This document shows positions 1,200-63,700 of a stretch of DNA of 64,000 bases, in pieces. The notes beneath the pieces were generated by a model, which worked only from the letters and a program-made list of their open reading frames with translations, searched no databases and was not told where the DNA came from. The position numbers and the translations under genes are program-made. The stretch's first letter is position 1, and each line of letters opens with the position of its first letter. The DNA is from Zygnema circumcarinatum SAG 698-1b (lineage: Eukaryota; Plantae; Zygnematophyceae): NCBI GenBank assembly GCA_037447605.1, contig CM074823.1, forward strand, positions 248,001-312,000, given 5' to 3'.

Positions 1200-4100
1200 A
1201 TGGAGACATCCGCAGCGAGTGATTTCCGCCCAACCGGAGTTGAGAATTTCACAAATCCAAAGTAAAAAGCAAAACTGCAACCAACACCATTTTCAGAAAC
1301 CCTAAAAACCAATCGCCTGCTATCAAAATAAAATGCATGCAACTTCAGTATAAACTGAAACGGAAACAGAACTGCATAGAACATCGATTGGAACGGAAAC
1401 AGGTAAAACCCAATAAAACGGAACGAAATGGAATTGAACGGAACGGAACGAAACGGAACGGAACGGAACGGAACGGAATTGAACGGAGCTAGCTCCTTCA
1501 CAAAGCACACTAAATTTTCGATTTTTTCTTTCTAACTTTCTTTTTTTTGTTTTTTTAACAGGGAATGCATGGAAGATGACGTGGATTTTGGGCTCCGCGA
1601 AAGGCGGTCGTCTCTTTCCGCCATTAAAACTTTTTCCCTTTTTGGACCGAACAGTCCACGTGCCCTCCGGGAAGGCGACGATGCGGAAAACGACAAGACT
1701 GGAAATGAGGAAGAAGACGAAGAAGAAGAAGAAGACGACGAAAGTCGGGAAAAATCGAATTATTTCGATACTGAACAAATTTTGAATGAATTTCTTTCCG
1801 AGAATATCGACGAGAACTTTTTTAAAGACGAGAATTCTGAAGTGGATTTGAAAGGGAAATCTGAGGCGAATTTTCCGGAAAATTTTAATAACAAAAATGG
1901 TCCCTATCGGCACCGAGCTATAAGTCGGTGCAGTCTTTCAATGGCGAATTCTTTTTTGGATCGGACCGTCTCCAGATCCCGCCATTCAAGTGCGTGATAA
2001 AAATTTAGGAAAAAAATCTAAATTTTTAATTTTTAGTCATTTTTCCTTACGTTTTGAAACAGTTTCTACATTTACTTAATTGATTCTTTTCGTTTTCTGA
2101 ATCTGAATCTGGTTTTTTTTTTTTACACAGGTAATTCACTCTATGCAGCGCTCTCAGCCCCTTCGGCGGCCAATGCACAAAATTCCGAAAAGGAAGTCGA
2201 AAATTTTACTTCCATTGAAACGGATTTACCGCCTCCGTTCAGTTCAACGGATTTCCGTAAAATGGAAACCCCGATCAGTTCCCGTACATTCTCTCCCTCG
2301 CGGCTCTCCCGCTCAAGCGGAAGCTCCTCGGATGCTTCCGAAAGTGACCGTTACGACCCCCACGTTCTCTTCCCCCCAAACGCAAAATTTGATTCGAATT
2401 CAGATTTGAATTCAAATTTGAATTCGAACTTCGACTTGTATCCGACCGTTGATCCCGATTCCACTTCAAATTTTCTCTCAAATTTCGATCCAAATGATGC
2501 CAATGAAAATGACGATGGCGATGTCGATGATGACGGCAGCGATTCCTGCGAATCCGAGGAAGGAGAGCCAAGTTTAACTCAAGTTTCCGTAGACGCATAT
2601 TTTGATCCACAAATTAATCTGGTCGGTGGATCCGAAATCAACCCTCAAAGAGGTGGATCCCGCAGAAACAGCTCGACGGAGAGATCCGGATCCACCCTCT
2701 CCCTGGATCCACAAGTTGATCCATCCACGACGGAAGGTAATAGAACCGTTGATCCCACATCCAGTTCTTCGTCTCGTCCACCCACGCCCCCCCAACGCCG
2801 AACTTCCTCGACTGCTCCTCCAACGGAGTATTCAACAAATTTATGCACATGTAACGCGGCCTAAACCCCACTCACACACTTGATCCAAACATTCCAACCG
2901 TTGACCTCATCCACTTTCCTGAACCCTCATTCCACCTCCATCCCTGCCCCCTCCTTTCCTCAGTTCCGTTTTCTGTTCCTTTGTTCTCTGTTTCTGTTCC
3001 ATCCTCAGTTTCACTATCTTCCATTCCATCCTCGTCAGTCCCGTCCTCAGTTCCGTTCCCCGTTTCGTCCTCCATTCCGTCCCAACTTCCACCGCCGACG
3101 GCGTACGGCCTCAACGGACTACGGAACGACAACGGAACAGCAACGGTTCTGGGCGCCATAGAACCCGAGCCCGTCCGGCGCCGGAGCCGGCTCTCCAGCG
3201 CGTGCGAGGACGCGCCCGCCGCCTTCCTCTGCCCAATCACGCAGGAGCTCATGGCGGATCCGGTTCTGGTGGGAACGGGCCAGACCTACGAACGGAGCTC
3301 CATTCAGAAGTGGCTCAGTCAAGGGCACCGTACATGTCCTGTCACGGGTGAGTTGGGGGGGGGGGGGGGGTTATACTAGCAATTAGTTTTATTGATAAAG
3401 TTCATTTAGTTTTGAATTGAGTTTTTCACTGGACCTTAAAGCTCTATCTTCAAATGTTGAACCCTAAACCCTATTCCCGTCCCTCAGGCCTTCCCCTGTG
3501 CTCGGTGGCGCTCCTCCCAAACTACGCCCTACGACACGCCATCCAATCGTACGCCGCCACGCGTGCGATCCCTCTCAAGGAGCCCGAGGCGGCGCCAGCG
3601 CAGACAGCCACTCATTACCTGCCACGTGGAAGTGTGGTAGCACGTGACACCCACGTGGCAGGCGTGGGCGCTCTCTGGGGGCGGAGTGTTCCCGACAGGG
3701 AGTCCCCGGCCATGGTTGCCGTTGGGATGCTTTTTGGGGGGACAGCGGAGGAGAAGGTGAGGGACTCAACAATGTTTACGGCTCCCCTCTCATATAACCC
3801 TAAACCCTGAACCCTAACCCTAAACCCTAAACCCTAAATCCTGAACCCTGAACCTTGGACCCAACCCTTCTTCCCCACTAGGACGCCGCCCTGGACACCC
3901 TCTGCCAGCTTGCGAGCAGCGCCGGCGAGGAGGGCCGCGCCGCCATAGTTTTGGCAGGCGGCGTGGCGCCCCTCCAGGCCGCCATGGCCTCGGCGATGGC
4001 GGCGGAGGGCGCCGGCGGCCATGCAGAGCGCGCCGCGCGGTGCGTCCGCTTCCTCTGCCGCAGCAACGACAGCTTCATTCTCCATGCGGCCTCGGGGGCC

Positions 4101-5919
4101 ATTCCGTTCCTGGTTAAACTGGTGGACAAGGTACGTGGAAAAGCGGGCATGGAACGGGGAGAGGGGATTTGGGGGGCGAACTGAGGATCTGGATCTTTGG
4201 AGATTCTACACGTGTGATGTATACCAAAATAGAATCTTAATGATTTTGATTCTGTTGACGGGCATCAATGATTGATCCAAAGGTTCTCTGGATGTGCGCG
4301 TTGCATTCTCCCCCTCACAAAGATTCTTTCTCTTGGAGGAATCTATTCGAATCTAGAAAGGATTCGTATGAGATTCTGTCAGACATTACTCCCCAGTCCG
4401 AGAAACCCTATTCATTTCCATATCTTTGAGATTCTCTTGCGTATATTTAAGATTCGATGAGCTTTTAACCTGTACGGCGCAGGGCTCCCCGGCGGCGCGC
4501 GAGGCGGCGGCTGGCGCGCTGGTCAATTTGTCGGCGAAAGCCGACATAAACAAGGTGACGATCGCGGCCGCGGGCGGGGCGGCACCGCTTGTCCGCATGC
4601 TGTCGGTGGGCCCGGGCGGGCGCGACGTGGCGGCCGCCGCGCTCTGCAATCTGGCGGCGGAAGACGACAACCGGACGGCCATCGTTGCGCTGCGCGCGAT
4701 CCCACCGCTCATCAAGGTAGGGAGTACCTAATTGTAATTAGTTTCTATTTTTTATTCATTCGGGCAGGCTAGAAATTCAGCGGACGTTCGCGATTGGTCG
4801 AATGTTTAAAAAATGTCGAGCATCGGCTTTATGTTTGTAGTTTTTGAAGTTTTTTCGCTTTTTTGTTTTTCGGGCAGCTGGCGGCGGAGGGGAGCGTGCC
4901 GGGCGGCGGCGAGTACGCGGTGCACGCGCTCGGCAGCCTCGCGTGCAACAGCGCGAACAGCTCCGAGGCGATCATCAGGGTGGGGACCCTTGAACCCTGA
5001 ACTCTGAACCCTGAACCCTAAACCCTGAACCCTGAACCCTAAACCCTCGACCCAAAACTCCAGAACACCCCTGAACCCTGAACGCCCTGAACCGTGAACC
5101 CTGAACCCTCAACCCTCAACCCTAAATCCTGAACCTTAAGACCCAACCCTTAACCTAAAAAACCCTGAACCCTGAATTCCAAACCCTGGACCCCGAAACC
5201 TGAACCTCAATCCTGAACCAAATTTTCATATGACCCAATTCCCTGTTCACTTTCTTTCCTCAGTTCCGTTCACCGTTCCGTTACACATAACGCTTTTCCG
5301 TGTATCCGTACAGGCCGGCGCCATCCCCGTCCTCCTGGCCATGGCGGCCTCCGCCAACTCGTGGGGCGAGGAGGCCGGCAGCCGCGCCCTCCGCAACCTC
5401 GCTGCCACGTCAGCACCCCTCGTCCTCGCCGCCATGCAACCAATCGGCGGCCTCGCCACTCTCCGCCGATTGGTCGAATTCGGCTCCGCACGTGCGGCCG
5501 ACGCCGCTACTTCCACCATCCAATTACTGAACGCTGCCCATCTCGGTCATGGAGCAGCACATGGAACAGCGTCTAACGGGATTTTCGACAGATTTCTACA
5601 TAGAAACCCGGTTCCGCCTCCGCCGGGGCCGCCGCGGTCGCGGTCAGCAGCTTCTGCGGAGTTTCACATGTGGAGCCGTTTTGTTACGCGTCGCAGTTCA
5701 ACGGGATCCGCCGATGGAACGGCAGTTCTGGCAGTTCAGTCGAGACACGGAACAGCCATTCCATGGGCGGCTCCAGTTGGAAATTCCAGTTCCAGTTCGA
5801 TTTCGCCCATGTATCCGGCGGGGCCGGAACGGCCAACGCCGCGATCCACGGGACAGCTGGCCGTTAGAACGGCGGCCCAACAGGGAACGATGCTGCCACG
5901 TCATCACTTCTCTGCTTGA
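1200..5919 (+). CDS. PUB: Plant U-box E3 ligase with ARM repeats and a long acidic/Ser-rich N-terminus (9 coding exons)
   Basis: U-box motif [34 protein letters not shown]...[16 protein letters not shown]; ARM-like repeats ([25 protein letters not shown]). Exons joined in frame at GT-AG: 1200-1261, 1562-1989, 2131-2850, 3051-3347, 3488-3756, 3882-4130, 4483-4716, 4878-4979, 5314-5919. Probable 5'UTR intron 612-1197. N-terminal exons are less certain. Confidence 0.88.
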
Positions 5920-6519: not shown

Positions 6520-7940
6520 CTACGACCACGCTTCGATTACAAACCTCCCGAGCCGCTGCAGCTCGAGGAGCCACGTGGCGGCCTGTGATTGGCTCATTCG
6601 GCCCTCTGTCCGAACCACATCCTCCAATGCCGCGGTGACACCTGTCGGCATCTTATTGGCCGACCCCGCCACGTACACGGCCGCGCCTGATTGGAGGAGA
6701 GCCCAAACCTTCGAACTCTGCTCGCGAATTCTGTGCTGAACGTAAACCTGCGAAGATGCGAAATTTTTTTATTAAAGAAATTAAAAGAGGGCACAATTGA
6801 AAGAGTAAAGAAAATGGGGGAGAGGATAAGGATGGGGGTATGTGGGGAGAAATGTATTGATTTGGGGGGAGGGGGAGGGAGAGTGGGGAGGGGGGGAGAG
6901 GGAGGGGAGGGGGGAGGGGGAGAGGGAGGGAGGGGAGGGGGAGAGGGAGAGAGAAAGAGAGGGAGAGGGAGAGAGGGAGGAGGGGAGAGGGAGGGGAGGG
7001 GGAGAGGGAAGGGGGAGAGAGGGAGAGAGAGGGAGAGTGGGAGAGAGAAAGTTAGAGAGGGAGAGAGAGGGAGAGGGAGAGGGAGAGGGAGAGGGAGAGG
7101 GAGAGGGAGGGAGAGAGAGAAGGAGAAGGAGAGGGAGAGAAAGGGAGAAAAAGGGAGAGGGAGAGAGGGCGAGTGAGAGAGAGGAAGAGAGAGGGAGAGA
7201 GGGAGAGGGAGAGAGAGGGAGAGAGAGGGAGAGGGAGAGGAAGAGAGAGGACGAGGGCGAGGGAGAGAGAGAGAGAGGGAGAGAGAGGGAGAGCGAGGGA
7301 GAGGGACAGGGAGAGAGGGAGAGGGACAGGGAGAGAGAGAGAGGGGGAGAGAGGGAGAGAGTGCGAGAGATAAAGTTAGAGAGGGAGAGAGAGGGAGAGG
7401 GAGAGGGAGAGGGAGAGTGAGGAGGAGAAGGAGAGGGAGAGAGAGGGAGAGAAAGGGAGAGGGAGAGGGAGAGGGAGAGGGAGAGGGAGAGAGGACGAGA
7501 GAGGGAGAGCGGGAGAGAGAGACCTTGCGTTCTTGGTCTCGCGAAAACGCCACAAAGAATCCACCTCCCTTCTCCTCTTCCAGCACTCCCCCAGGACACG
7601 TGTAAGCCTTCCATTCGTCCCGGTACAAAAAATCTTTCGATTCGTTCCGGCACCCGAAAAAAAAGAGATTTGGGGCAGCGATTTTTTTTTCCGCCAAGGA
7701 AGCCGCGGAAGGTTCCCCTGATTCTTTTTCAAAAAATTGCTTTTTTTGAGCTGCCCGATCCGCCAAAAAAGATCGAAAAGGAGCGCATCCAGTTCCCGGG
7801 CCGACCAAAATAAGAGGTATTTCGGGGGGAGGGAGACGGAGGTAGCCTTTTGATACCCATATTGGGACGGTTCCTGGAGAGAGAGAGGGAGAGGGAGAGG
7901 GAGAGGGAGAGAGGGGGAGGGAGGGAGGGAGGGAGGGAGG

Positions 7941-13906: not shown

Positions 13907-14524
13907 GCCACGTGGCGCGAGCTGAGTGGCGGAAAGTCTGAAAGAGGAGGGGAGGGAGGGAGGGGCGGAAGGGAACAGTTGGCGACCCTTAAAGAAGGAA
14001 TAAACGGTCCCATGCCATGCCATGCCATAGCCATGTGCATAGGCATGCCATGCCATGGCCATACGACCCGAACTGCGCCAGCGACAGGATTTCCGCCGTC
14101 GGGATTCGTCGACGACCGAGCGTGCGACGACTAGGTGTCGCACTATGGCGTTCATCGGGCGCTATGATATGGTAGGTCGACTCATGCATGGCATGCCTCA
14201 TGGGGATGACGGATGGCGTGCCATGCAAACTACAGTTTAACGGTATCCAGTTCCAGTTCAACACAGAGAGCCAGCTCGGCCCAACGAACCAGTTACATGT
14301 GTCCCGTTAAGATCCACCCAAGCACATCGTGCCACGTCACACAAAATACCACGTGGTCGATTAACATTGGCTCCGAGTACCACGGGACAACGGTCAACTT
14401 TCCGTACGGTACTCTAACACAGACCGATGGCAGGAAGGGAAGGGGAAGGGCTTTTGAAGGAGAAGCGGAGGTAAAAACCCTAAGCACCTCAAGAACCCTA
14501 AAAACCCTAAACCCTGAAAGCGCC

Positions 14525-17500: not shown

Positions 17501-18820
17501 GGAAAATTCTCATGTCAATGTAAATTGGGTCTGAAACTTGTACAGGTCCAAATGTGAAGCAGAAGGTGCTGCTACAAAATTAGGAATCTTTTCTTTCTTC
17601 TTTACATCTCGAGCGCAAATTTGTAAACAGCTACGTTTTATTTTATTTCATTGTTGAATTCATTCCTATTTTCTGCTTTGTGCTTTGTTGGGATAACCCT
17701 AGAATCTTCTAATAACTGATCCGTTCGATTCTTTTTTTTTTTTGTTTTTCTGTCCAGTTAACGCTGCATACAGATTTGGTCGTTGCGAACGTTTACGCCT
17801 TCAATAGGTGAAAGCCAATCTACAAATGTATACATATATCATATATTTACATTATGCTTAGAGCTTGTATCCTCCTATACCCCTTGCTACTTCTCTAAAT
17901 CTCTAAATTCATTTTTTTCATTATCTGACGTCAGCCGGCGTCATGGAGTGGGGGCAGGCAGATCTTGCAGGAGGCGCTAAAGACAAATTTGGCGATTTCG
18001 AGCATTCAAAGGGACCTGCTTCCCTACCTCGTCAACACCCAAACAACGGTAAATTCAAATTTTGAATATTTAAGTTTAAAATTTACTTTGCAGAAATAAG
18101 TGGCATGTTAACAAAGTGCAAGTCAAATCGTAAGCCTCTCTCCCTTCTTCTCTCGCTCTCGTCCCTATCTATCTTCTATGTGCCTCCTCTCCGATCTCCC
18201 TTTCCCTCACCCCCTCTCCCTCCATCTCCCTCTCTCTCCTTCTGACTCTCCCCCTCTTCCCTATTTTCTCCCTCCCCCTTGCCGCCTCCCCTGTCCGCTT
18301 CCCCATCTCTCCCTCCCTCTCTTTCTCTTTTTCCTTCTCCCATTCCCTTCCTCTTCCTCTTCCCCCTCCTTCCCTTCTCTCCCTCCCCACATCCCATTCC
18401 TTTCCTCTCCCCCTCCCCAACTCCCTCTCCCCCTCCCCAACTCCCTCTCCCTTCCCCCTCCCTCCCACTCNNNNNNNNNNGGGAGGGGAGGGAGGGGAGG
18501 GAGGGAAGGAAAGAGGGAGGGGAGGGAGGAGGGGGAGGGGGAGGGTTAGTAGCGTGGGGGGATGTTTTGTCTGATCTCTCCTTCTATCTCTCTCTCTCTC
18601 ACTCCCTTTCACTCTCTCTCCCCCTCTCTCGCTCTCTCTCTCTCTCTCTCTCCCTTTGTCGTGTTGTCTTATGTGAGCGCAGATGGCTGGCGATGCACTG
18701 CACCTGACCGGCTTTCAGCTCTCTGCCAGCAACAATGTCATCCATGAGTCGGTTGAGCTGGGCTCAAAAACTGCGGTTTGTGACTCTCCCTCACCCTCTC
18801 TCTCTCTCTCTCTCTTACTT

Positions 18821-18863
<43 letters not shown>

Positions 18864-20083: not shown

Positions 20084-20126
<43 letters not shown>

Positions 20127-30113: not shown

Positions 30114-30564
30114 AAAAAATAAAATAATATGTTTATGGTTATAAATAAAAAAATAAAAAATAAATGTTAGCTTTTTAACAAGGTACCAACCGCAAGTAGA
30201 AGTGCTTTTACGTCAAAAAAAGTAAAAGTTAATTCGTATTTTTTCACTAATAAATAGCCAGGGTCTTTAAGACAGTCGGCCATGCAGGCGAAGGCGCTGG
30301 GATCGACCTGACCACGTGGCGATCTCCCATTGGTTAGACAGACCATAAGTCGTCCAATGGGGTTAAACCCAATTCAGAGGAACTATGGGCCAAATTACAT
30401 TATTAATAATGTAAAAATAATGAATGAATTATTATACAAGGAGTAGGACCCTGTACGGATGCTTACGTGGCAAGCCTCAATTGGCGGATGCCATCAAAAG
30501 TAGCGTCAATAAAAACCCAATCCTCTGCTGAGAGAGTTCAGCTCACAGTTAGTTTATTTTTTAA

Positions 30565-30660: not shown

Positions 30661-31559
30661 CATCGACGCCCTGAACCCTAAACCCGAAACCCTAAACCCT
30701 AAACCCTAAACCCGAAAACCCGAAAACCCTACTCCCCAAACCCTAAAACCCGAAAAACCTACCCCCTACACCCTAAACCCTACCCCCAAAACCTAAACCC
30801 TNNNNNNNNNNCCCCCCCCCCCCCCCCCTAATGTGAGTGCAAGTTGACTTAGTCATGGCTAATGACTAACCAATGGCCGAGCAAACTGGACACGTGGCAA
30901 CAAAATGACTAATCTAAAAAGATGCCTGGACGGGCATCAGAACGATTTTTCACGAGGTAAAATACCAGCACACGTGGCAATATTTCATTGGCTTGTCGTC
31001 CAAGACATCTCAGGCGCTATTTCTTTGAAAACCGAGATTTTAACGATATGAAGGCTCTGATTTGGTTTTTCGCTACAAACCACAAACCAGCACAAAAACC
31101 TTTGTAGGTTTTCAGGGTTCTTAGGGTTTTTAGGGTTTACTAGGTTTACAGTCTTTTAAAGACCCCCAACGGCCCCGTTTGCATGCAGCCATTCCGTTCC
31201 GTTCCGTTCTATTCTGTTCTGTTCAGTTCAACTGTTAGAGTGGATGAAAACCGTAGAGGAAGGGAGGAGGAGCCACAGCCAATCGGGATTCGCCACATGG
31301 ATGGAAACGCATCGCCATTCAGAAGTTGTAAAAAAACACACAAAATCGCATTTTCATGTTCTTTCCCCAAAAATAGCCCTCAAACATCCTCCTCCTCAAC
31401 CACTACCGCCGAAATTTCTGCTCCCCGATTTTTTTTTTTTTTTTCTTCCCCAATTTCTTCCCGTCACTTCTCCCCTTCTACGCTCCCAAAAATTCTTAAA
31501 ATCTGTTCCGTTCCGTTCCGTTCCACAACTTTCACAACTGCAACAGCGAACCGTGATCT

Positions 31560-38406: not shown

Positions 38407-39165
38407 AATTAAAAAAAAAAAAAAAAAGAGAAGGAAAGGAGAATTCAGGGAAGGGGGGAAGGAGGAGGGAAGGGGGAAGGAAAAAGGAGAAATTTTGAAA
38501 AAAAAAGAACAAAAAAATTGAGAAAGTTGAGGGACTGACCGCTCAGATAGATGTACATATATGTATATGCTTTTTTTTTTTCCTTTTTTTTCTTTGGGGG
38601 GAAGGGGGGGGGGGGGTGGTTGTCTTTTTGACAAAAGGGTTTGGATGTAATTTCAAATTTGGGCCTCGCGAGGTGGGGATTAGCTATGTGAGGGGACAAT
38701 GCTTTTCTTTTGGTTTTGGGTGGAGCGGGCGAGGGCTAAATCTGTAATTTAAAGACCAGTGATCAGTGCAATGGAAATTTGTCTGAAATCTGACCGATTG
38801 GGTGAAACTGTTCAAACTTTTTATTAGAGTTCGCGTGTCTTCAAGTGCGAGGTCACGAGTTCAATTCCTACCATTTTCATTAGTACTCTTTATTTCATTT
38901 CATTGATGGCTGTAATTACACTTGCCAGTCTGAAATGCTTTTCTTGACAGGCTTTATCAAGTCTAACTTTATCAAGGGTCGCAATGGTCCGAGTTGTCAA
39001 ATGTGACTTTATCAGAAGACGTGCTATAGTTCATCCGTCAGGATATGACGTGGCATGACGTCACAGTACCAAACATGATTGATCGAAAGGATCATGAGAG
39101 AAACTGTAAAGAAAGGTGTGCATCTAGCCGAAAAGGTGTGTAAATAGACCCTATGGTTTTTTAAC

Positions 39166-40059
39166 GGGTAGTGATATTTCCACCCCTTTTTTGGATCCAA
39201 ACACCCCTTCCCGGCCGGGCAGATTTCAAAAAGGATTAAAAACGGAAAATGCTTTTTTCACACCTTTTTGGAATCGATACCCACCCTCCATCGGCTGATT
39301 TTATTTTTGCGAAACAAGGAAATAACCCGTCACCCCATTTTGAATATCCCGCCTACCTGAATTTTTTTTCACGCGTGCGGCCAATCGCAGCCGTCGATTC
39401 CCTCGCAGATCGCAACATGGCAGATCACTATTTGCTCTGCAGGAGGGCTCGGTCACAGCGAATGGCAGGTGCCCACGTATCCCGCCAAAGTCGTCTCAAA
39501 AAGTTGTCCGTACAAGTGTCGTACGGTCGCATCTTTGAGGAACCCAATATTTCGTACATTGAGAGCTTGGACCAATCAAAGTTTTTCACGTCAAAAATTT
39601 AACACGTGGCAGCGCACTCGCGCGTGCGATCCGGCTTTGGCGGGACTCGTGGGCGGTTTCCATTCGATAAGATCGAGCCCGGCAGCAGATCGAACGGTGA
39701 CCTGCAGTGGTGCGATCTGCGAGGGAAATCGACAGATGCGATTGACACGCACGTGTGAAGGACGGACACCCGCGAACGATCTCGTGGCGGACGGATCTTC
39801 CGCTCCGAGCGGATTCGGGCAGGCAGATATTTCTTTCCCTCAAAAAAAAAATTCAGGGAGGCGGGATACAGTATTCAAAATGCGGTGACGGGGTATCATT
39901 TTCCTTGGTTAGCAAAGATAAAATCAGCCGACGGAAGAAGGTGGGTATCGATTCCAAAAAGGTGTGAAAATAGCATTTTCCGTTTTTAATCCCTTTTGAA
40001 ATCTGCCCGGCCGGGAAGGGGTGTTTGGATCCAAAAAAGGGGTGGAAATATCACTACCC
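39166..40059. mobile_element. Non-autonomous foldback/MULE-like element with ~200-bp TIRs
   Basis: GGGTAGTGATATTTCCACCCC...(39166-39370) is the reverse complement of 39840-40059. Flanks TTTTTAAC / TTTTTAAA give a 7-of-8 TSD. The interior is also partly self-complementary. No ORF. Confidence 0.8.
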
Positions 40060-40680
40060 TTTTTAAATTGAGGAAACAATATACGAAATAAGTTTCTAGA
40101 CTCCGAAATTTCCAGTAACGGATCAAACCTCGTCTCTTACTCCTGGAAGTCCGCAGGTGTGGTCTCCAGCTGGACCAATCACAATTCATATGTGCTCGTG
40201 CAAGACCGCCAAGATTCCCACAAACGGTCAAATTTCTTCTGTCCTTTTGAACACTCCAGTTTGACCGATTTGTCGGTTATCAGCGGTAGTTTTTGGCACT
40301 GCACGGACGCACATGTGGCGCGACGGATTCGACAGGTGCAACAAACATAACCGCCATTTTGTCGCTTCTGCGAGCCCCGTTGACCCGGACATTCCGTGAC
40401 TTTGACCGCAACCTAAACGACAGCTAAATCGACAGTCTCGAATCTTCCATGTTAAATAAAAATTTAATTCCGGATTTTCCCTCAAAATCCGTTCAATTGA
40501 CTTTCCGAAACGACCCATTCGGCGACCCGTTGGTCCCGAAGGTCCGGCCCACTTGGATGACGTCACATCCGTAATATAACGTCACAGAAAGTACGCATGC
40601 GTCATCATAGTACAGGTTTTGTCGCTTCGGTTCGTAAAGGTCCAAGCATTCGTACATGAAATCCGTACAAGCTTCTGGAA

Positions 40681-41705
40681 GGAAAATTCTATTCTCACAC
40701 CTTTTTTGTCTACACACAGACCTCTTTTCGCCGGGCAGATTTTAAAATAGACAAAAAAGGAACACACCTTTCACACCTTTTTTTCTCTCACCTTTTTTTT
40801 CACATCTTTTTGGAATCGATACACGCTACTACTGAGCGGCCGAGCGCCGTGAGCACCATTTCTGTCGGGCAGATTTTACTCCGTATCATTTATTTTCAGA
40901 GAGAAAAATATCTGCCTGCCCGAATCCGCGCGGAGGGAAAGATCCGTCCGCCACGAGATCGTTCGCGGATGGCCGTCATTTACACGTGCAATAATTTCCG
41001 CCGTCGATATTCACTCAGATCGCACCTTGGCAGATCACCGTTCGATCAGCAGCCAGGCTCTGTCCCACGTGTCCCACCCAAGCCGGCTCAAAGGACCGTA
41101 CAAAAGGCGTACGTCCGCAGCTTCGAGGAAAGTCAAAAAACGTAATAAAAAGTTCAGTGCCTGTACCAATCACAGTTTGCCACGTCCAAAAATAACACGC
41201 GGCAGATGGTGATTGGTACAAGCTCTCAATGTAAGGAATTTAGACTTTCCTCGAAGCTGCGACCGTACGAATAGTGTACGGACCTCAAGCCGGCTTGGGT
41301 GGGACACGTGGGCGTGTGCCATTCGCTGGGACCGAGCCCGGCTGCCGATCGAACGGCGATCTGCCGTGGTGTGATCTGCGCTAGAATCGACGGTGTATGG
41401 TTTCTGCACGTGTGAAGGACGGCCACCCGCGAACGATCTCGTGGCGGACGGAACTTCTGCTCCGAGAGGATTCGGGCAGGCCGATATTTTTTTCTCTGAA
41501 AAAAACAAGAAGGGGTAAAATCTGCCCGATGGAGAAAGGTGTGTCGATTTCAAAAAGGTGTGAAAAAAAAGGTGAAAAAAAAAAGGTGAAAAAAAAAAAG
41601 GTGAGAAGGTGTGAAAGGTGTGTTCTTTTTTTGCGCTATTCTAAAATCTGCCCGGCGAAAAGAGGCCTGTGTGTAGACAAAAAAGGTGTGAGAATAGAAT
41701 TTTCC
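40681..41705. mobile_element. Non-autonomous foldback element, an almost fully palindromic ~1 kb, related to 39166-40059
   Basis: Ends GGAAAATTCTATTCTCACACC...GGTGTGAGAATAGAATTTTCC; perfect 8-bp TSD TTCTGGAA (40673-40680, 41706-41713); arms pair to about 41150/41225; shares GTGTGAAGGACGG..CCCGCGAACGATCTCGTGGCGGACGG with element 1. Confidence 0.88.
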
Positions 41706-42164
41706 TTCTGGAATTTGACATCAATTCGTACGCTTTTGTCATAATAGTTTTCGTTTTTCGGCGATAATTCAAGCGACTCACAAATAATATAAGAAATGCA
41801 TTGGACCAATTACAACATTACGCTACGTGTACATTATGTCGACGTGGCGCGTTGTATTGGTTGTAAAGTCAGTTCCGACGCCTCTAACCGATACCAAAAA
41901 ACGACAAATTTCTTCAGTGAAAGTACGACCTGTTCATACTCCCATCTCCGTATGAAAATATTCTGTCCGCATTAGATTTTGTCCGTACAGTTACAAACCG
42001 ACATGCGAGACGAATCCGCTACCGTGTTTGACCTCTGAATTTCACCCGTACTTATTGTACGGTCTATGTCGGCAGACCCGACAGTCGCTTCGGGGTCCCA
42101 GTGAGCAAACGGCCGCCAGCTACTCCGCTCAGCGACAAAAAACGTTCAGATTCTGCGGCGGCCC

Positions 42165-42358: not shown

Positions 42359-43080
42359 AATCTTCTCCTTGTCCTTAGAGACCCCTCCCCCCTCCCCAAA
42401 TCCGATTATCTATTTCCGCCGTCCGTACAGAACGACCGACAGATGGTCAACACGTGGACCCCTCGGGCCAATCGCAACCGTTCGTACGAGATCTCGTCTG
42501 ATCTGACGGTCCGGATGGATTCGTACGAACGTTGGCCCTTGCCGCCAGCTGGGGCCGCCCAGGGCCGTGACCGGCGGTCCGCACAGAATGTCGGTGGCTG
42601 AAATCGAGGGTGAGGAGTGTACGGACGGGGGAGGGTTCAGGGGGAGGGGGACAGCTGGCGCTGTCAGGGCTGGGTACGAGGGAGAGGGGAGGGAGGGGAG
42701 GTGACGGAGAGGGTGAGGGAGGGNNNNNNNNNNGGGGGTATAAGGGGACTAGGGGAGGAAGGAAGGAGGTATCGCGCTCTCTCTCTCTCTCTCTTTGCGA
42801 TCTGTTGCTATCTCGGAACGGTGAGGGAAGGGAGAGAGAGAGAGAGAGAAGAGAGAGGGAAGTAGAGAGTGAGAAAGTGTGGAATAGAGAGAGAGAGGAG
42901 AAGAGAGAGAAAGAGAGAGAACGAGGGAGAGTAGTAGAGAGTGAGAGAGTTTGGAAGAGAGAAAGAGAGGAGGGAGAGAGAGAGGAAGTGATCGAAAGCG
43001 CGAGAATAAAGCGAGTTGCCCAATCCTGGAACGCCACGTGGCAGTATCTGGGTGTCGGAGCTGCCCAGTGAGAAGCCGCC

Positions 43081-44238
43081 ATGTGGCAGGCGCGGCGAGG
43101 CCAGCTGTCCCGTTCCATGTTGGGCCTGTTCGCAGTTCCGTTCTGTTCGCTGTTGCTGCTGGCGGTGGGCTCCGCGACGGCCAAAGCAAATGAAACAGGT
43201 ATTGCATTTTTTTTTTTGGGTAACTTTTTTTTAGGTTTTTTAGTTAAATTTAGAATAGTCGAATCCTACTCTTTTCGAAACATTTAAAGGTAAAGGATAA
43301 GGATGGGATAGGAGGGAGGGGAGGGATGTAGTTGTGAGCTACCCCTTTTACTTAATCCTTGAAGGGTTTCTGTCTCTTTCCTACCCCCCTCCACTCTCTC
43401 CTCCCCCTCTCTCCTCTCCCCCTCTCTCTCTCTTGCTCTCCCCTCCCCTCCTTTCCCTCCCCCCTTCTCTCTCTCTCCCCCCTCCCCTCCTCTCCCTCCC
43501 CCCTCTCTCTCTCTCCCCCCTTCACTCACTCTCCCCCCTCCCCCCCTCTCTCCCTCCGTCTCACTCTCTCTCCCCTCCCCCCTCCCTCCCCCTCTCTCTC
43601 TCTCAATCTCCCTCCCCAGCCCTCTTTCTCGTTCTTTAAAAAGTAACTTCTTGAAATGTGTCAAAAGATGAACTTTTATTTATTCTGGTCTTATAAAAAC
43701 TCGTCGCCAGGGCCAAAAAATAAGGGATTGGGCAAATCGTAATTAAAAAAAAAAAAATTTGCGGAGAAGTCAAAGCCCTTAAAGGTGGTTCCCTTTTCAA
43801 CTACGCTAGACTCCATTGCCGGTGGATCCTGAGTCCACTTTTTTTTTAACCCCTCGGAAGTCCAGGTTTCAACTTCCCACTAGATGTGAGGTCCACGTGT
43901 CAGTTGCCTTATTGACCAGTCGTTGACCAATGCAAGTCCACGTGTCAGTCGTTGACCATTTGTTGACCATATCGTGAGCACTTGGGAGTCCACGTGTCAC
44001 CCTCTGATGGGTCCTCCGGGTGCAGTGTACCTGGTCATGATGAAGGACCTGCCGCCCACTGTCGCCTACCGCGGCAGTTTGAAGGGCTACCGCGCCACGG
44101 AGGCCGCGTCCAATGGCAGACTGACACGTCGCTCGAGCGCTGTACGGAAGTACGCGGACCACCTCGGAAACTGCCAAGCGGCCGTCATGAAAAGGAACCA
44201 AGTCTTACTCAAGAAGCGCCTCTATAGGTGCTCTCTCG

Positions 44239-44290
<52 letters not shown>

Positions 44291-46182: not shown

Positions 46183-46234
<52 letters not shown>

Positions 46235-49200
46235 CTCTCCCTCTCTCTCTCTTTCTCTCTATCCCCGCCTGTCCTTCTCTCCCTCTGTTTCTCTCTCCCT
46301 CTCCCTCTCTCTCTCCTTCCCTCTGTTTCCTCCACCCGTTTTTTCTCTCTCTCTCCCCACCTTCGTTCTCTTCTCCTCCCCCTCCTCTCCCCTTTTGTTT
46401 CCTTCTCCTCTCTGTCCCTCTCTCTCTCTCTCTCCCTTTCTGTTTCCTTCTCCTCCTCCCCCCTCTCTCTTTCTTCTCCCCCTTCCGTTTCCTACTCTCT
46501 CCCCCTCTAATACTCTCTCTCTCTTTTTGTCTTCCCCACTAGTAATCTCTCCCTCTCTCTCTCTCTCTCTCTCCCCCCCGCCCCTCCTCTCCCTCTCCTC
46601 CCCCTCCCCCTTTTTCCTCCCCACCCATTTCCTCCCGCTCTCTCCCCCATTTCCCCGCCACTCACTCCCTCCAATCCAATCACTTCACGCCACTGACCTC
46701 TTTCCTTGTCTATGTGTCCCGCTGTTCAGTTACCGTTACAGTTTGAACGGATTCGCGGTCTCGCTGACGTCAGCGCAGGCGGAGAAGCTGAAGGCCGACC
46801 CCGACATCGCGATCGTGGAGCCGCAGCGGACCATTTCGCCGTCGTCTCTAAGCACCGTGAAGTTTTTGGAGCTGCCCGGCGGGCTCTGGCGGGACGTGGG
46901 CGGGCGCGGGAAGGCGGGGAAGGACGTCATCGTGGGAGTGGTCGACAGCGGGATCTGGCCCGAGCACCCGAGCTTCTCTGACCAGGTTTGACTTGACTTG
47001 ACTTGACTTGATTTGACCTGACTTGACTTGACTTGGCTTGACTTGATTTGATTTGACTTGACTTGAGTTGTCTTGACTTGACTTGAGTTGACTTGACTTG
47101 ACTTGATTTGATTTGACTTGACTTGAGTTGGCTTGACTGGACTTGACTTGACTTGACTTGATTTGACTCTACTCAGCTTGGCTGGGCTTGGCTTGATTGA
47201 CTTTACTTGACAAACTTGAGTCGATTCGACTTTACTCGATTTGGCTTGTTGTGGCACGATTTGGCTTGGCTCGACTTGGCTTGACTTGGTTGAACCTGGC
47301 TTGACTTGGCTGGACCTGGCTTGACTTGGCTTGACTTGGGTTGACTTGGCTTGACTCGCCTCCATCGGACTCCATTGGAGTCAACTCGACTTGCCTTGGC
47401 TTCGTTTGGCTTCTCTTTATTGAATTTTTTTTACTTGATCTGAACTCACTTGACTGGCGACGGCTCGACTCGACTTGATCGTTTCCATGGTTTGATTTGA
47501 CTTGACTTGACTTGACTTGACTTAACAAACCATGCTTAGCCATGTCTTTTTTTGGGGCTAAACGGTGCGGATTTTGGGGTCGTTCCATGTGCGGATGTTG
47601 CAGGATGGCAGTTACGGCAACATTTCGACTGTGAGGCCGACATGGAGCGGGGGCTGCGCCGCGACGGCGGACTTCCCCGAGTGCAACGGCAAACTCGTCG
47701 GCGCAAAGTTTTTTGCGGACGGCCTCGAGGCGTCCGGCGACATCGTGGACACTTCGCTGGATTTTTTGTCTGCCCGGGACAGCACCGGTACGCCTCTCCT
47801 TCAAAAACCCTAAACCCCTAAACCCTTGACGAAATTGAGGAGGAATAGGGGGTGTCAGACTTAACAAAATCTTACGAAAAGCGTTACGAAAAAAAAGGTT
47901 ACGAAAGTACTCCGCCGCAGGAGGATCGCGATTATACTGGAGTACTCGTTCTGATGTCAAACTTACAAACACGCGTACTGAAATTTTTTAAGTCTGACAC
48001 CCCCTAATGTGGAGGAACGCTGTCGTTTTCCAAAAATTGACCTTTAAACAAGAGTTTTTGTTGCCACATGGCACCCTCTTATTTGCGTCACAGCCATTGT
48101 TGCCACGTGGCGCCCTCCCATTGGCAGGTCATGGCAGCCATTCTGCCAGCGTGGCAGCCGGGAATTACGGAGTTCCCATCTCCTTCGCCAATAGGACCAG
48201 CCTCGCCTTCGGGCCGATCGGAAAACTTTCGGGGGTTGCCCCGCGGGCGCGAATTTCGGTGTACAAAGTTTTTTGGACGAGCGCGCTGACCGGGGAAAAT
48301 AAGGCGTACTCGAGTGACGTCATCGCGGCCATCGACATGGCAGTAGGTACGTTGAACCTGGACGGGTTATTGGGTGCTTTGGGAATTGGGGTTTTGGGGT
48401 TTTGGGGTTTGGGGGTTTTACGGTTTTGGGGTTTAAGCTTGGTTGGGAGAGGATGTTGCGGGACTGTCGTCTGTTGAGGGTTTAGGGTTTAAGGCTCGGA
48501 AGTGAAAGTTTATGGTTTGTTTAGAGTTTTGGGTATTAAGGGTTTCGAAAACTCGAACCCTAAATCCTCAAATCGCGAAAGTGCTTTGGCGTTTCGCAAA
48601 TTTCACGCTTCAAAAACGGACTCTTACTGGCACGTGGCGCGATTTGAGTAGCTCCAGTAGCCCCTGGTTTGGCACGTGTCGAGCCTCTAGCTGTCAGAAT
48701 CTTTTTCTCCATAATTCTCGACCACATGTTCAGACAAGTCCAGAATGACGACGTGGCACAATTTTAACTTTTCGAACGGATTTCGTACGAATTCTTGCAA
48801 CGCCGACATTTGCCGGCAGAATCCGACAAAATTCGTTGACGAGCCAGGGCGGCATGGAGTATGTTGTCGTTTGGCCCTTCGGCTAAAGATGGGCCGCAAC
48901 CGTGCTGTCTTTTTAGGCTGACCGTCGTCATCCCTAAACGACAAAAAAGCTGACAAAACCATTGCGTCGGTTATTCTTGTCGTCTTGTATTAGTTTTGTC
49001 GTGTCTATAAGGAAATTTTGTCGTATTAGAGTTTGATTCGTCCAAGGTTTTTCCCCTTGTGCCGGTCCGTTCCTTGGAACGCTGTCACGTCACGCTCAGT
49101 CTTGAGCCCGGTCAAGGTTTCTTGTCTTTTTCCGCCAATCAGATTGAGGGATCAATCACAGGCAGCCACGTGGACAATTTTTTACACGTGTAACCTCTGA

Positions 49201-55779: not shown

Positions 55780-58248
<2,469 letters not shown>

Positions 58249-58519
58249 CTAAAACCTGAACCCTAAAATGCTAAACCCTAAAGTCCGAACTTTCAGACCC
58301 TAAAAGAACCCGAAGCTGCGGATCACCTCAAAAGCCTTGGAATGTTAAACGTTAAAACCCGAGGAACAACCCAAAACCCTATGCTAAAACCCTCCAATGG
58401 GGTTCGAGATACTCTGTAGAAGGGCCAAATGGAGGCTTAAACCCTAAGAAAGTTCGAAAACCCTAAAATTCCCTCAGCCCCCGGAAACCACTTGGTGACC
58501 CTCGGAAATATCCTGGAAT

Positions 58520-58633
58520 CCTATGTGGCAGGTCTTCTGGTCCACGTGGCAGGTCCTATGGTCCAGGTCCACGTGGCAGGCCTTCTGGTCCTACGTGGCA
58601 GGTCTTATGGTCCTACGTGGCAGGTCCTACGGT
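58520..58633 (+). promoter_or_regulatory. Five-copy ~22-bp repeat containing the ABRE consensus YACGTGGC upstream of WDR5
   Basis: Unit CTACGTGGCAGGTCTTATGGTC; cores at 58523 (variant), 58543, 58570, 58592, 58614. Confidence 0.55.
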
Positions 58634-60493
58634 CTCGATATTCAAAAGACAGCAAATCGCGGCCGGGATAGAGAGGGTTTAGGGTTTAAGGATTAGGGTT
58701 TTATGTACTACACAAGGCCTCGGGGGGGAGGAGGAGGAGGTAGGGTTTGGGTTTAAGGGATTAAAGGGGTTCAGATTAGGGTTCAGAAATTTAGGGTTTT
58801 GGCAGATACTGCGCCTCGCGGCCGCATGACGCTAACTGGAACCATGGAACTACATGGAACGGGGCGGCGGCTTGCACGTGTGAGGGGTCGTCGCACGTGT
58901 GAAGGGGCGCGCGCGCAGAGGGAAGGGGCAGGGAGGGAGGGTTTTACCGGTACATGAAAACGACGACGCGGGAAACGTCAAAAAGGGGTTAGGGTTTAGG
59001 ATTTCAGGGTTTAGGGTTTTTACAAAGTTTGGAAAGCTCGTTTTTTGGAGGGAAAAAACTGTACGGCTGTACGGTACGGTTAAAGATTCGAATGTCACGT
59101 CACATGGATGGACAGAGCGGTGACGGTACGAACTAGACAAATCTGTACGGATAGAAACAGTTTGGCCAATGGAATGTTGCCACGTCAGCACGTTTGTACG
59201 TGTCAAGTTTTGATTGGTGTTTCCCTGACACGTGTACATTCATTCCACGTGGCGTATTTCCAGTGGCTTAGGGTGGGTTTCCATCAGCCCGTTTCGTAAC
59301 AAGCTCGTTACGGTCCACGTAGGACGCCGTTTTGCAGATAAAATGACGAGTTCCATCAAAACGCCGTTTTCCAATCAGCGATCGCCACGTGCACAATTTG
59401 AAGCGTGCGCCGTGGCCCACAGCGGTTACCGTCCGCGCGTCGCCGCGGACAGTTTTTTAGGGTTTGCAGGAGGCGACGGCCGCCGCCATTACAGCCGCCA
59501 CTTCCCCTCCCTTCTCTTCCCTCCTTCCCTGCCTTTCGCAGCAACGCCATTCGCGGCGTTTGCCTCGCAATTCAAGAGAATTAAATATTATTGTTGTGGT
59601 GGAAGTTGTGGAAAGGACATGTGACNNNNNNNNNNGTGGAAAGGACATTTGACAACATACGTCTCTCTTTTCGTTTTTTTCCTTCTCCAAAATGCAAGCA
59701 TAAAAAAATGAAAAGAATGAGAATGAAAGCAAAAATCTGACAGTGAAAATTTGCCAATCACGTACTCAAATTAATTAAACAAAAAGAATAATAATAATTA
59801 CAATCCTAATCAATTGCTTCTAAAGCGCGGAGGAGCGGCGACACAACCATTAGACCTTCACCACAGAGTGCGATCTCCCTCCTCCCTTTAATAGAAAATC
59901 TCCATCGGTGCGAGAAGTAAAGGGAGAGCCCCCCCCTCTCCCGGCATGCTCCAGAGCCGTCTCCAAACCCTAATCCTAAGGCGAGAATGGGAAGAGAGGC
60001 CCCTCGGTGCTTCATCCCCTGTCTGTTTTAGGGTTAAGCACCGGAGCTTAACTCCGCAGCCCTCCCTCTTGCAACGAGCTTCTACGTCGTTTGGCTGACT
60101 GGCTCATGGAACGCCCGTTGTCCGTTCGCAGGCACTCGGGCTTCTCCTCGTGGTTTTTCAGATAAGTCGGCAGCCATGGCTGCACCTTGGGAAGCTTCCT
60201 CGGCGCTGAAGCGACCTGGGACCACGACCGGCGGTCACCGAGCGTTGACGGCTTCCAGCCAGCGTGGCAGTCGCACGCTGGCGGATCTTTGGTAGCCACG
60301 TGGCGGCACGCGAATGGTCGTAATGGCGTTACACCACCTCCGGAGCAGCATTCTGTGGAACGGTGCTCGTTACCACGTGGCAGCCACGTCGGCGCCACGT
60401 TGGCGGAAACGGCCTCATGGAACCCATGGGTCGTCGTCCATTACGACGCCACGTCGGAATAACGGGCTGATGGAAACCCACCCTTATCGTATT

Positions 60494-60770: not shown

Positions 60771-60828
60771 CGCACGTGCTAAAACTTCCTCCCCGCCAAC
60801 CGGCGTCGTTCCCCGCACGTGCGAAGCC

Positions 60829-63700
60829 ATGGCTTCCGCTCTCCTCGCCGCTCCGTGCCTATCGGCTCGCAGCGCCACGTGGCTCACTTCCGAGCGCCAC
60901 GTGTCGCGATCCTGCCGCGTGTCCTCTCCCTCGTACTCCCCAAACCCTAATTTGGCACGAACTTTCCGCGAAGCTCCTCGCCAGGGTTCAGCAATGACAC
61001 AAGTTGCCTTTTTATTTTTTTATTTTAATTAATTGATTTATTTCTTATTTATTTTGTGCCACGTGGCAGGGGTTCACAGCGTGCGCGCTTTGTAGGGTTT
61101 AAGGTGTCATGTCACGCCGCCGTACGGGAGAGAGTGGCGGACTCTTTTGTCGTTATTCCCACGGAGCTGCCACGTGGCGGCCTTCCAAAGGGGTTGATCC
61201 ATTTCTTAGGAGGCGCATTCATCGGAGCGACGCCAGATGTCACTTACAGGTTGGACCCCTAATTTTAAATCTCTGAACCCTAATTTTAAATCTCTGAACC
61301 CTAATTTTAAGTCTCTGAACCTTAATTTTAAATCTCTGAACCCTAATTTTCAACCCCTCTGAACCCTAATTTTTAGCCTCCGAACCCATTCTAGTTTCTG
61401 TACCCGAACCCTATATAACTGAAACCTTAATCCCAATTGTGAATCCCAACCTTAATGTGTGACCCCAAATGTTGATTTCTGAAATAATCCTCTAACGCCT
61501 TCTTTTCCATTTTCTGTTCCTGTTTTTACTTGCTTTTAGTTATTTAATCGACCGCCTTGCTGACGACGGCTATCTTGTCGTTGCCACTCCGTACAACGTC
61601 ACGTTTGACCATCTTGACTGCGCCGCCACCATCCAATCACGGTTTGCCACGTGTCGCGAGCGCCTCCTCGGAGGGGCGTTGACTTTTGGCGGATGGAACG
61701 GACCGGAGCTCGCGGACCTCCCGGTGTACGGAGTCGGCCACAGGTTTGAAAACCCGCTCGTGGTTTCTGGTTTCTGGTTTTTAGGGTAAAGGTTTAGGGT
61801 TTAGGATTTAGGGTTTAGGGTTTAGGTTTTTAGGGTAATGGTTTAGGGTTTAAGATTGAGGTTTTTAGGGTAATGGTTTAGGGTTTAGGGTTTAGGGCTG
61901 AGGTTCGAGGGTTTAGAGTTGAGAGTTGGGGGGTTAAGGTTATGTGAAGAAGGGGTTTCAAGTGGCGTTCTATGTAACACGCTCCGTGCAACGGATTCCG
62001 TGTGCAGCAACGGAGCGCTCATGCACGTGCTCATGGGATGCCTCTTTGATAAAGAATCGCTTCCCTCGGTATGCCCCCTCTCCCTCCCTCCCTCCCTCGC
62101 TCTCACTCTCTCCCTCCCCCTCTCTCTCTCTCTCAAACCCCTTTCCCTCTCCCTTTCTCTCACTTTCCCTCCTCTCTCTCTCTCTGTCCCTTCTCTCTCC
62201 CTTCCTCTCTCCCTCTCTTTCTCTCTCTCTCGCTTTCTTCATGATGGGACCTTTGCTCTGTTTTTTTCAGTTTGGGGGGCATTTTAATTACGCTTCTTCA
62301 ACCCCTTTTTTTTTTTTAATAGTTTACGCATGTCGACAGGGAAATCTTATCTTCTTTCTTACTATTGTCTCTTAACAGTCAATTTTTCCTTTTTTTTTTT
62401 GGTGAATTTTCAGGCTAACGTTCTGATCTCCTACAACAACAAGCCGGCTTCCGAAGCAGTTCCTTTTTTCGACCAAGTGTGAACACCTCCTCGCTTAGTT
62501 ACAGAGGGAGGGAGGGAAAAAATATGCATTCTCATGTATCGGGATATAACAAGATATATCGAGATATCTTTACATCTCAGTATCCCCCAATATTGGGATA
62601 TATCTCAAACATTTCCCCCTATATCTAGACCTACCTATAGAGAGAGAGAGGGAGAGAGAGAGAGGGGGGGGGAGAGAGAGAGAGAGAGAGAGAGCTAGAG
62701 ATGAGATGAGATGAGATATATCGCGATATATCTCGATATCATTGCACAAAGTTCAACATACCTCGTTCGATCAAACTTAATTCATGCATACAAAAGCCCT
62801 AAATCTTTTTTCTGCCCTTGTGCCATGTGGCGTGTACAGATTGGCCCGTTCTTCAAGCAGGCAGCGCCTGCAATCGAGGCTTTTCCTTTGACAGGAATCG
62901 CACTCAGCTTTGCAGGTCAGGCCGTGTCTCCGTAAACCTTAAACCCTAAAATACCACCTTAAGTAACCCTTAAAGAAACCTTAATAACCTCCCTCCCTCC
63001 TCCCTCCCTCTCCCTCCATCCCTCTCCCTCCCTCCCTCCTTCCTCCCTCCCTCTTTCCTCCCTCCCTTCCTCCCTCCCTTCCTCCCTCCCTCCCCCTCTC
63101 TCCCTCTCTCTCCCTCCCTCCCTCCCTCCCTCCCTCCCTCTCCCTCCCTCCCCCCCGTCCCCCCCTCTCTCCCTTCCCACTTCCTTCCCTCCCTCCCTCC
63201 NNNNNNNNNNCCCTCCCTCTCCCTCCCTTCCCCTCTTCCCCCCCTCCCTCCCTTCCCACTTCCCTCCCTCCCTCCCTATTTTTGTTATTTTTTCAAACGT
63301 CATTTTTTTTGGGAAGGAGTGGCATTACGCAGAGCAGGCGTTGCAGGAGCTGGAGCGAGCCAATCTGCCGCTGCCACGTGGCATCGCTCCGGAGGATCTC
63401 GAGCCTCTCTCCCGATTCGCCGATCAGATTGCCCCGGTCTTCGGGCAGGTAAAAAAAAAAAAAAACCTCGTCTGAAGTTTATTTTTTGATTTTTTTCTGA
63501 CAGGAAACAAGTACCAGCTAAACGATTAAATTCAAGTTTCTTTTTAGTTTTTTATTTTTTCGAAAAAATTGTTAAATGCCATGATTTTTAAGTCTGTGCT
63601 GACGTGGCAGGTGAGGGAGGGCGTCTCTGAGTTTCGTCCGACCCCGTCCGAAAATCGACGAAATATCGCTTTGTCGTATTCGGTCCCGAAAAACCTTCTG
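60829..63700 (+). CDS. Plastid-targeted alpha/beta-hydrolase-fold protein, DUF1350 family (3' end beyond window)
   Basis: Ser/Arg/Ala-rich transit peptide; IHFLGGAFIGATPDVTY, GYLVVATPYNVTFDH, LPVYGVGHSNGAL, NVLISYNNKPA, EFRPTPSEN. Exons about 60829-60985, about 61096-61249, 61540-61743, 62008-62068, 62414-62476, 62840-62915, 63333-63448, 63611-63700. The first junction is ambiguous. Confidence 0.87.
61257..61385. repeat. 21-bp tandem array (CCCTAATTTTAAATCTCTGAA), 4 good plus 2 degenerate copies
   Basis: Begins 7 nt into DUF1350 intron 2. Confidence 0.88.

Follow-up and report, generated by a model that had tools for sequence, protein, structure and literature searches.

A composite of CCAAT and CCACG at a fixed 9-nucleotide spacing recurs in exons, gene flanks and transposons of a 64-kb window of Zygnema circumcarinatum

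In animals, CCAAT boxes bound by NF-Y are common near the transcription starts of many unrelated housekeeping genes and are carried by some repeat families. The endoplasmic reticulum (ER) stress element (ERSE) is a composite, CCAAT-N9-CCACG or, in its plant form, CCAAT-N10-CACG, in which NF-Y occupies CCAAT and ATF6, XBP1 or bZIP28 occupies CCACG (PMC3645738). This study concerns a composite of the same geometry in the alga Zygnema circumcarinatum SAG 698-1b. The window analysed is a stretch of 64,000 nucleotides (nt) of contig CM074823.1 (positions 248,001 to 312,000), numbered here from its first letter, and all statistics refer to this one 64-kb window. The composite was found there far in excess of chance, at one strict spacing, in coding exons, just upstream of start codons, in intergenic DNA and inside transposons. 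The initial annotation had described it as pervasive and untied to chaperone genes, which is borne out by the counts and by the neighbouring genes (PUB-ARM, NDOR1/CPR-like, Sec7, subtilase, WDR5 and DUF1350), none of which encodes a chaperone. Literature searches returned no report of an alga-wide ERSE-like element.

Copy number, spacing and half-sites

Thirteen exact copies of CCAAT-N9-CCACG are present on the two strands, compared with an expectation of 0.03 and a maximum of one in 100 dinucleotide-preserving shuffles. When one mismatch was allowed, 43 sites were counted (13 exact and 30 with one mismatch), against 2.6 expected and a shuffle maximum of eight. The exact composite is therefore hundreds-fold above chance, at about one copy per 5 kb. 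The same 13 exact copies, with the same coordinates and strands, had been reported in the initial annotation, together with 17 of the one-mismatch copies, all of which are present.

The spacing is equally strict. A scan of spacers from 0 to 24 nt gave one sharp peak, with 13 copies at 9 nt and 0-2 at each other length. The peak persists when half-site abundance is modelled, a check that the initial annotation had called for: 139 CCAAT and 176 CCACG per 128,000 strand positions yield a calculated 0.19 copies at any single spacing. Relaxing the half-sites sharpened the peak, with 20 CCAAT-N10-CACG sites and 17 CCAAT-N11-ACGT sites against 0-3 at neighbouring spacers, and no peak was seen when the CCAAT half was reversed in orientation. 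The claimed geometry of mammalian ERSE-I and of the plant ERSE (pERSE) is thus matched exactly. The pentamer located 14 nt upstream of CCACG was CCAAT in 13 cases, CCACT in five and CGAAT in five, whereas each occurred 0.1-0.3 times at control offsets.

No exact copy lies inside a tandem repeat, although such repeats make up 33% of the window; all copies are found in unique islands. No site comes closer than 150 nt to an assembly gap, of which the window has 12. The sequences that flank the 13 exact copies (40 nt) show no mutual similarity, and the composite is therefore not a repeat family; as a set, the sites neither share similarity beyond the motif nor lie within element boundaries, as members of a repeat or transposon family would. 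A near-identical, gap-containing tandem duplication of 1944 nt, starting near 43692, doubles the sites 44110/46054 and 44723/46671, each pair of which is for this reason counted once. Along the window the sites are irregularly spaced, with long empty stretches at 14.4-23.1 kb, 31.3-35.4 kb and 49.2-58.5 kb.

Position tables built from the exact and relaxed sites gave the fuller consensus RR-CCAAT-[C/G][A/G]-N-A-N-N-Y-Y-G-C-CACGT-[G/C]. The first position 3' of CCAAT is C or G in 19 of the 20 CCAAT-N10-CACG sites, and among the 13 exact copies A stands at -2 in seven and G at -1 in seven. The NF-Y consensus has purines 5' of CCAAT, and C or G followed by A or G on its 3' side; judged against it, the sequence flanking the CCAAT half is of the NF-Y type. 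The right half is an ACGT-core site, YGCCACGT[G/C], corresponding to a plant G-box or a G/C hybrid. CCACGTC, present in seven of the 20 sites, is no E-box, and a bZIP partner is therefore likelier than a bHLH partner from what is known of these families.

The G-box is also abundant on its own: CACGTG occurs 66 times (3.9 times the expectation), CCACGTGG 27 times (24 times) and the perfect decamer GCCACGTGGC, which is the commonest form of the right half, 14 times (about 180 times). In approximately one third of the G-boxes, a pentamer that differs from CCAAT at no more than one position stands at N9 to one side. With its ACGT core within CACGTG, preferably within CCACGTGG, and its position near gene starts, this half has the properties of a plant G-box, and G-boxes cluster at the 5' regions of the NDOR1-like, DUF1350 and WDR5 genes. 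The G-box did not stand out in a maximal-order Markov ranking of the k-mers of the window, as the shorter words within it are enriched too.

With regard to other palindromes of this type, TACGTA is absent from the window, where about 14 copies would be expected, whereas CACGTG is enriched about 4-fold and GACGTC is at expectation. The variant CCACT-N9-CCACG recurs five times (3608, 13911, 25041, 26096 and 59248), compared with 0.2 at control offsets. As this variant is not expected to suit NF-Y, another partner that reads CCAC, for instance a CCT-domain/NF-YB/YC complex, is conceivable.

Exonic copies and codon choice

Genes were mapped exon by exon from Pfam and PDB matches and a crude codon-usage score, which yields a partial, homology-based map of unjoined exons; splice sites and several start codons were placed from the sequence. 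A simple filter on GC at third codon positions was too crude for gene finding.

Three exact copies lie within coding exons supported by homology. The first (3543..3561, + strand) is in the second U-box exon of the PUB-ARM gene, where it encodes (A)IQSYAAT, and is followed by a CCACT-N9-CCACG variant at 3608 and by three G-boxes at 3623-3657. The second (6574..6592, - strand) encodes SQSQAATW in the last coding exon of the NDOR1/CPR-like gene, about 50 nt before the reductase stop codon and next to a convergent gene. The third (61633..61651, + strand) encodes IQSRFAT in the profile-supported exon 3 of the DUF1350 gene. These three copies share one reading frame, giving the pattern [I/S]-Q-S-x-x-A-T-x in three unrelated proteins. 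The initial annotation had counted a fourth exact exonic copy, at 63360..63378 (+ strand), in what would be a C-terminal exon (…ERANLPLPRGIAPEDLE…). Its exonic status is only probable, since a gap (63201-63210) lies upstream and the exon has no Pfam match and no homology; it may belong to the DUF1350 gene. A CCAAT-N10-CACG copy (ACACG) at 44110..44128 (+ strand), duplicated at 46054, encodes SNGRLTR in a probable I9-propeptide exon, for which a Pfam search gave no match. All five exonic copies, verified and probable, are in the sense orientation.

The homology-supported coding sequence, 6.3 kb in total, was resampled with the proteins fixed and the codons redrawn from local codon usage. The three exact copies compare with a resampled mean of 0.06, and none of 20,000 resamples reached three. 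In the same coding sequence, nine CACGTG were observed against a mean of 2.2, six CCACGTGG against 0.56, and 22 CCAAT/ATTGG against 9, none of these counts being reached in 3,000 resamples. Within coding sequence, G-boxes occur mainly in the 5'-most exons of the reductase and DUF1350 genes. As peptide-preserving resampling fails to yield the motif, it is the DNA motif that is kept, not the peptide, and the codons in these exons appear to have been chosen to keep it. This backs the earlier claim that the composite occurs inside conserved coding exons, and adds a constraint at the level of DNA. In the same exon of a distant DUF1350 orthologue, the peptide IQNRFNRC is encoded without the motif, in place of IQSRFATC here; the motif was therefore built by two amino-acid changes together with codon choice.

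The density of copies is about 0.48 per kb in coding sequence and about 0.30 per kb in unique sequence overall. Nevertheless, a copy is present in only three to five of about 23 exon segments with homology support, the other copies being located in flanks, introns or junctions, intergenic DNA and transposons. The composite is therefore not the exon mark that had been proposed.

Copies around genes and in mobile elements

Upstream of the subtilase, an exact copy in the sense orientation (43020..43038, + strand) ends 42 nt before the ATG at 43081; no other element can be recognised in the interval from a GA repeat to this ATG. At the NDOR1-like start, a CCACT-N9-CCACG variant (13911..13929, - strand) ends 5 nt before the ATG (13906-13904), which has G-boxes on both sides (13909 and 13892). 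A facing pair at 14318..14370, about 410-465 nt upstream of the same ATG, reads CCAAG-N9-CCACGTCA, a 15-nt gap and CCACGTGG-N9-ATTGG on the + strand, its exact arm (14352) being on the - strand. The other facing pair (59166..59217) consists of CCAAT-N9-CCACGTCA, a 14-nt gap and the reverse complement of CCAAT-N9-ACACG (59199, - strand), and is located in intergenic DNA upstream of WDR5 (- strand, ATG 58224). These pairs span 51-53 nt. Around the DUF1350 start (ATG 60829), six G-boxes are clustered at 60773..61176: at -56 and -13, twice in exon 1 (encoding SATW and RHV), at a likely acceptor (CCACGTGGCAG/G, the slash marking the splice point) and in exon 2 (LPRG). Further copies have less clear neighbours. 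A one-mismatch copy (CCACA; 31279..31297, + strand) overlaps the possible start codon (GCCACATGG) of an open reading frame (ORF) without known homologue, and ERSE-like copies are found upstream of ORF 22778-23485, which has no homologue and no Pfam match.

The initial annotation had placed three copies at splice acceptors, which is plausible from the AG acceptors beside homology-supported exons. An exact copy (48106..48124, - strand), antisense to the subtilase, ends at a likely 3' splice site (…CCCATTGGCAG/GT), which immediately precedes the exon with the GHGSH catalytic histidine. A one-mismatch copy (62826..62844, - strand) spans a likely 3' splice site of the DUF1350 gene (…GTACAG/ATTGG…), and the copy at 9572 is at another likely 3' splice site; both sites were predicted from the sequence. 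Three exact copies on the - strand follow the Sec7 domain and are intronic or intergenic: 30315..30333, about 260 nt past the end of the domain exon; 30466..30484, in the same stretch; and 30973..30991, which follows the gap 30802-30811 at a distance of about 160 nt and precedes a possible ATG at 31296 by about 300 nt.

About eight of the 43 sites are inside three recognised mobile elements. In one foldback transposon (39158..40067; 131-nt arms, 95% complementary), ERSE-like copies at 39572 (+) and 39648 (-) and a G-box at 39603 surround the centre. In another (40673..41713; 86-nt arms, 92% complementary), a facing pair, 41166 (+, exact) and 41198 (-, one mismatch), is near the symmetry centre. 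The third is a non-autonomous PIF/Harbinger-like element of 1.2 kb (59270..60484) with a perfect 24-nt terminal inverted repeat (TIR; AGGGTGGGTTTCCATCAGCCCGTT) and TTA on both sides. The composite is present in it as an exact copy at 59371 (+) and with one mismatch at 60299 (-), and several CCACGT repeats lie towards its right end. The element contains the gap 59626-59635 and is inserted 4 nt from an ERSE-like site.

With regard to the genes themselves, the PUB-ARM gene (about 2262-5900, + strand) was recognised by U-box and Arm matches in Pfam, with U-box profile positions 2-45 in 3038-3376, the rest in 3487-3570 and an Arm repeat downstream. The NDOR1/CPR-like diflavin reductase (- strand, ATG 13906 to a stop at 6523) has Pfam and PDB support: ORF 13766-13930 matches the Flavodoxin_1 profile from residue 15, and ORF 6523-6768 can be aligned with the last 78 residues of human CPR (3qfc; E 3.8e-12). 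The exons of the Sec7 gene (+ strand) were located by Pfam at 27.8-30.1 kb, the profile ending at about 30056, and a Ccdc124 gene (- strand), recognised by homology, would start within 31-38 kb. The subtilase (+ strand) extends from ATG 43081, which is followed by signal-peptide-like sequence, to about 52.7 kb, with Pfam matches to Inhibitor_I9, Peptidase_S8 and PA; the Peptidase_S8 alignment begins at residue 43 of ORF 47998-48474. WDR5 was identified by Pfam (E 8e-106); the best identity in a protein-database search was 85%, and the named best matches of WDR5 are streptophytes (Closterium, Spirogloea and land plants). In the DUF1350 gene (+ strand), profile positions 6-37 are in 61029-61259 and positions 34-99 in exon 3 (E 2e-8).

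The unique islands occupied by these genes are separated by tandem repeats, mainly CT/GA-rich tracts and interstitial telomere-like (TTTAGGG)n arrays, which fill introns and spacers. A minisatellite at 58515-58640, about 300-420 nt upstream of the WDR5 ATG, comprises about five 27-nt units with a G-box-like core (GGTCC[A/T]ACGTGGCAGGTC…). Between 60490 and 60700 there are four repeats of a GAGGTCGC(G/T)GGTTCGAA(C/A)CCCGA-like unit, which resembles a tRNA T-arm/B-box. ARAGORN (tRNA) and Rfam scans of positions 1-61700 found no RNA gene, and the GGTTCGAA-like units at 60.5-60.7 kb were accordingly rejected as tRNA genes; they could be a tRNA-derived short interspersed nuclear element or a tail. 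Two exact duplications were observed, 18481-19538 versus 19744-20801 (offset 1263 nt) and 43692-44304 versus 45636-46248 (offset 1944 nt). Both are bounded by or contain 10-N gaps, and may be assembly artefacts, not real tandem duplications. The subtilase region also holds arrays of the TTGAC pentamer (W-box core; about 74 copies) at 45040-45408 and 46988-47356, one in each copy of the 1944-nt duplication. In addition, three GTCCACGTGTCAG units (43894, 43939 and 43991, plus the duplicate), 45-52 nt apart, precede the second subtilase exon by a short distance and probably belong to intron 1.

Possible roles and comparison with known elements

We lean, on balance, towards reading the composite as a real protein-binding DNA element for a putative NF-Y-like and bZIP pair, serving as a regulatory landing site of general purpose. 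On this view CCAAT would be occupied by an NF-Y-like trimer and the ACGT core by a bZIP dimer, the two binding jointly in the manner known from the ERSE of animals and Arabidopsis, and the pair would have become a very abundant general landing site in this alga. Cooperative binding of two factors on DNA is consistent with the strict spacing, with an ACGT half that is abundant by itself and with NF-Y-type sequence around CCAAT. A general regulatory module is in line with the promoter-proximal copies that stand alone, with the facing pairs and with the clusters of G-boxes at 5' ends; it would be used singly just upstream of ATGs, as intergenic facing pairs, with extra G-boxes at gene 5' ends, and in the three transposons. 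Copies kept in ordinary coding exons might serve as internal regulatory sites. The composite is thus probably a general landing site here, and not an ER-stress switch.

Several points weigh against this reading. The copy at 6574, being in a last exon beside a convergent gene, cannot belong to an ordinary promoter. The presumed PUB start (2262) has no copy, and the region of 31-38 kb, in which the Ccdc124 start is placed, is free of G-boxes. The density in coding sequence is not below that of unique sequence, which does not look promoter-specific, and several copies are so near an ATG that they must themselves be transcribed. Moreover, the names given to the binding proteins, and the effect of their binding, are deduced purely from the motif. 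In view of the copies deep in exons and at a 3' end and of the gene starts without a copy, a purely promoter-based reading is incomplete, and the element may also act in chromatin or its architecture, or belong to internal and antisense promoters.

A tentative variant of the proposed landing site would place its action in chromatin, which it might open, fence off from the introns and spacers filled with repeats, or mark for origins or recombination. The element would then be a lineage-specific, genome-wide NF-Y-like/bZIP landing pad, selected in all available unique sequence including exons, and not a gene-specific promoter element. Its exonic copies would be kept at the cost of amino-acid changes, and transposons would carry the module to exploit or spread it. 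The composite was not found, and no clear G-box excess was seen, in 21 kb around WDR5 of Closterium (nine CACGTG against about five expected), in WDR5 contigs of 10, 7 and 4 kb from metagenome relatives (WDR5 75-81% identical), in a 4.5-kb contig with an NDOR1 fragment from a GC-rich alga, or in three DUF1350 loci of distant relatives. At the density of the window, several copies would be expected in this sequence; the amplification therefore looks lineage-specific, on samples that are small and thin.

It is also possible, if rather doubtful, that the composite is an architectural element, bound every few kb regardless of annotation by the NF-Y-like/bZIP pair or by one other protein. Such an element might hold chromatin in an open state, form a barrier to the surrounding simple and telomere-like repeats, or mark replication origins or recombination sites. 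This could explain why the copies are roughly evenly distributed over exons, introns and junctions, 3' ends, intergenic DNA and transposons, why they are not depleted in coding sequence but kept there against codon expectation, and why all of them are in unique islands of a window one third of which is tandem repeat. That NF-Y is a pioneer-type factor is in keeping with this role. Nevertheless, the spacing is irregular, with the long empty stretches noted above, and at several gene starts there is clear clustering of copies and G-boxes.

The positions of the facing pairs at or around the centres of two foldbacks, the copies and CCACGT repeats near the ends of the TIR element and the share of sites inside the three elements might indicate that the motif belongs to mobile elements, as their promoter or protein-binding site, and that the host copies are mostly remnants or by-products. 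We regard this as unlikely. The flanks of host copies share no similarity, the exonic copies are in conserved domains aligned by Pfam or PDB and arose by point substitutions, as the two DUF1350 peptides illustrate, and capture of a host module by the elements is equally likely. Dispersal by transposons accounts for at most a minority of the copies.

The uniform sense orientation of the exonic copies and the frame shared by the three verified ones could instead suggest that these copies have a separate cause at the level of RNA or peptide, such as a site for an mRNA-binding protein or a favoured peptide. This is quite improbable, given that codon resampling with fixed peptides does not reproduce the motif, that the same motif and spacing occur on both strands in non-coding DNA and transposons, and that five cases are too few for a strand bias to count. 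Even less probable is a true unfolded-protein-response regulon as in animals and Arabidopsis, despite the identical geometry and the copies that read CCACGTCA, the core of the unfolded-protein-response element (UPRE). Copies at this frequency, without chaperone neighbours, do not mark promoters of ER chaperone or quality-control genes, and are located in exons and transposons as well. Chance, base composition or an assembly or repeat artefact can practically be dismissed, for although copies are doubled by the gap-containing tandem duplication, the shuffles fall far below the observed counts, the spacing has a single peak, and copies avoid both tandem repeats and the vicinity of gaps.

If the window is typical, the genome would hold of the order of one exact copy per gene. 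It would then offer a particularly clean natural system for studying the evolutionary reuse of a transcription-factor pair of fixed geometry, the writing of a regulatory code over a protein code, and the exchange of promoter modules between transposons and their host. The composite is also a simple and testable candidate promoter or enhancer cassette in an alga close to the origin of land plants.

Compared with mammalian ERSE-I, which is bound by NF-Y together with ATF6 or XBP1, the algal composite has the same half-sites, the same 9-nt spacer and the same NF-Y-type CCAAT flanks, and its promoter-proximal copies likewise have CCAAT distal and CCACG proximal. In contrast, ERSE-I is confined to a few dozen promoters of chaperone and ER-quality-control genes, whereas the algal copies occur about once per 5 kb at unrelated genes, in coding exons, at a 3' end and in transposons, and their right half is longer, forming a complete G-box or G/C hybrid (GCCACGT[G/C]). 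The pERSE, bound by bZIP28 with NF-YA4/B3/C2, is alike in its CCAAT-N10-CACG form, to which the 20 relaxed sites conform, and in belonging to the streptophyte lineage; some algal copies also carry the CCACGTCA core of the plant UPRE. In Arabidopsis, however, pERSE is a stress-specific promoter element, while the algal composite is vastly more frequent and unlinked to unfolded-protein-response genes. The NF-Y promoters of animals differ in that their CCAAT boxes are not known to have an obligatory partner at a set distance, nor are exonic copies known that persist against codon expectation. With the plant G-box (CACGTG or GCCACGTGGC; GBF, HY5 and PIF classes), the algal element shares the strong enrichment of the decamer and the clustering near gene 5' ends, but about one third of its G-boxes have a CCAAT-like pentamer at exactly N9, and their density in 5' coding exons is unusual. 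A composite that is stress-specific in animals and flowering plants thus appears here as a mass-produced general element.

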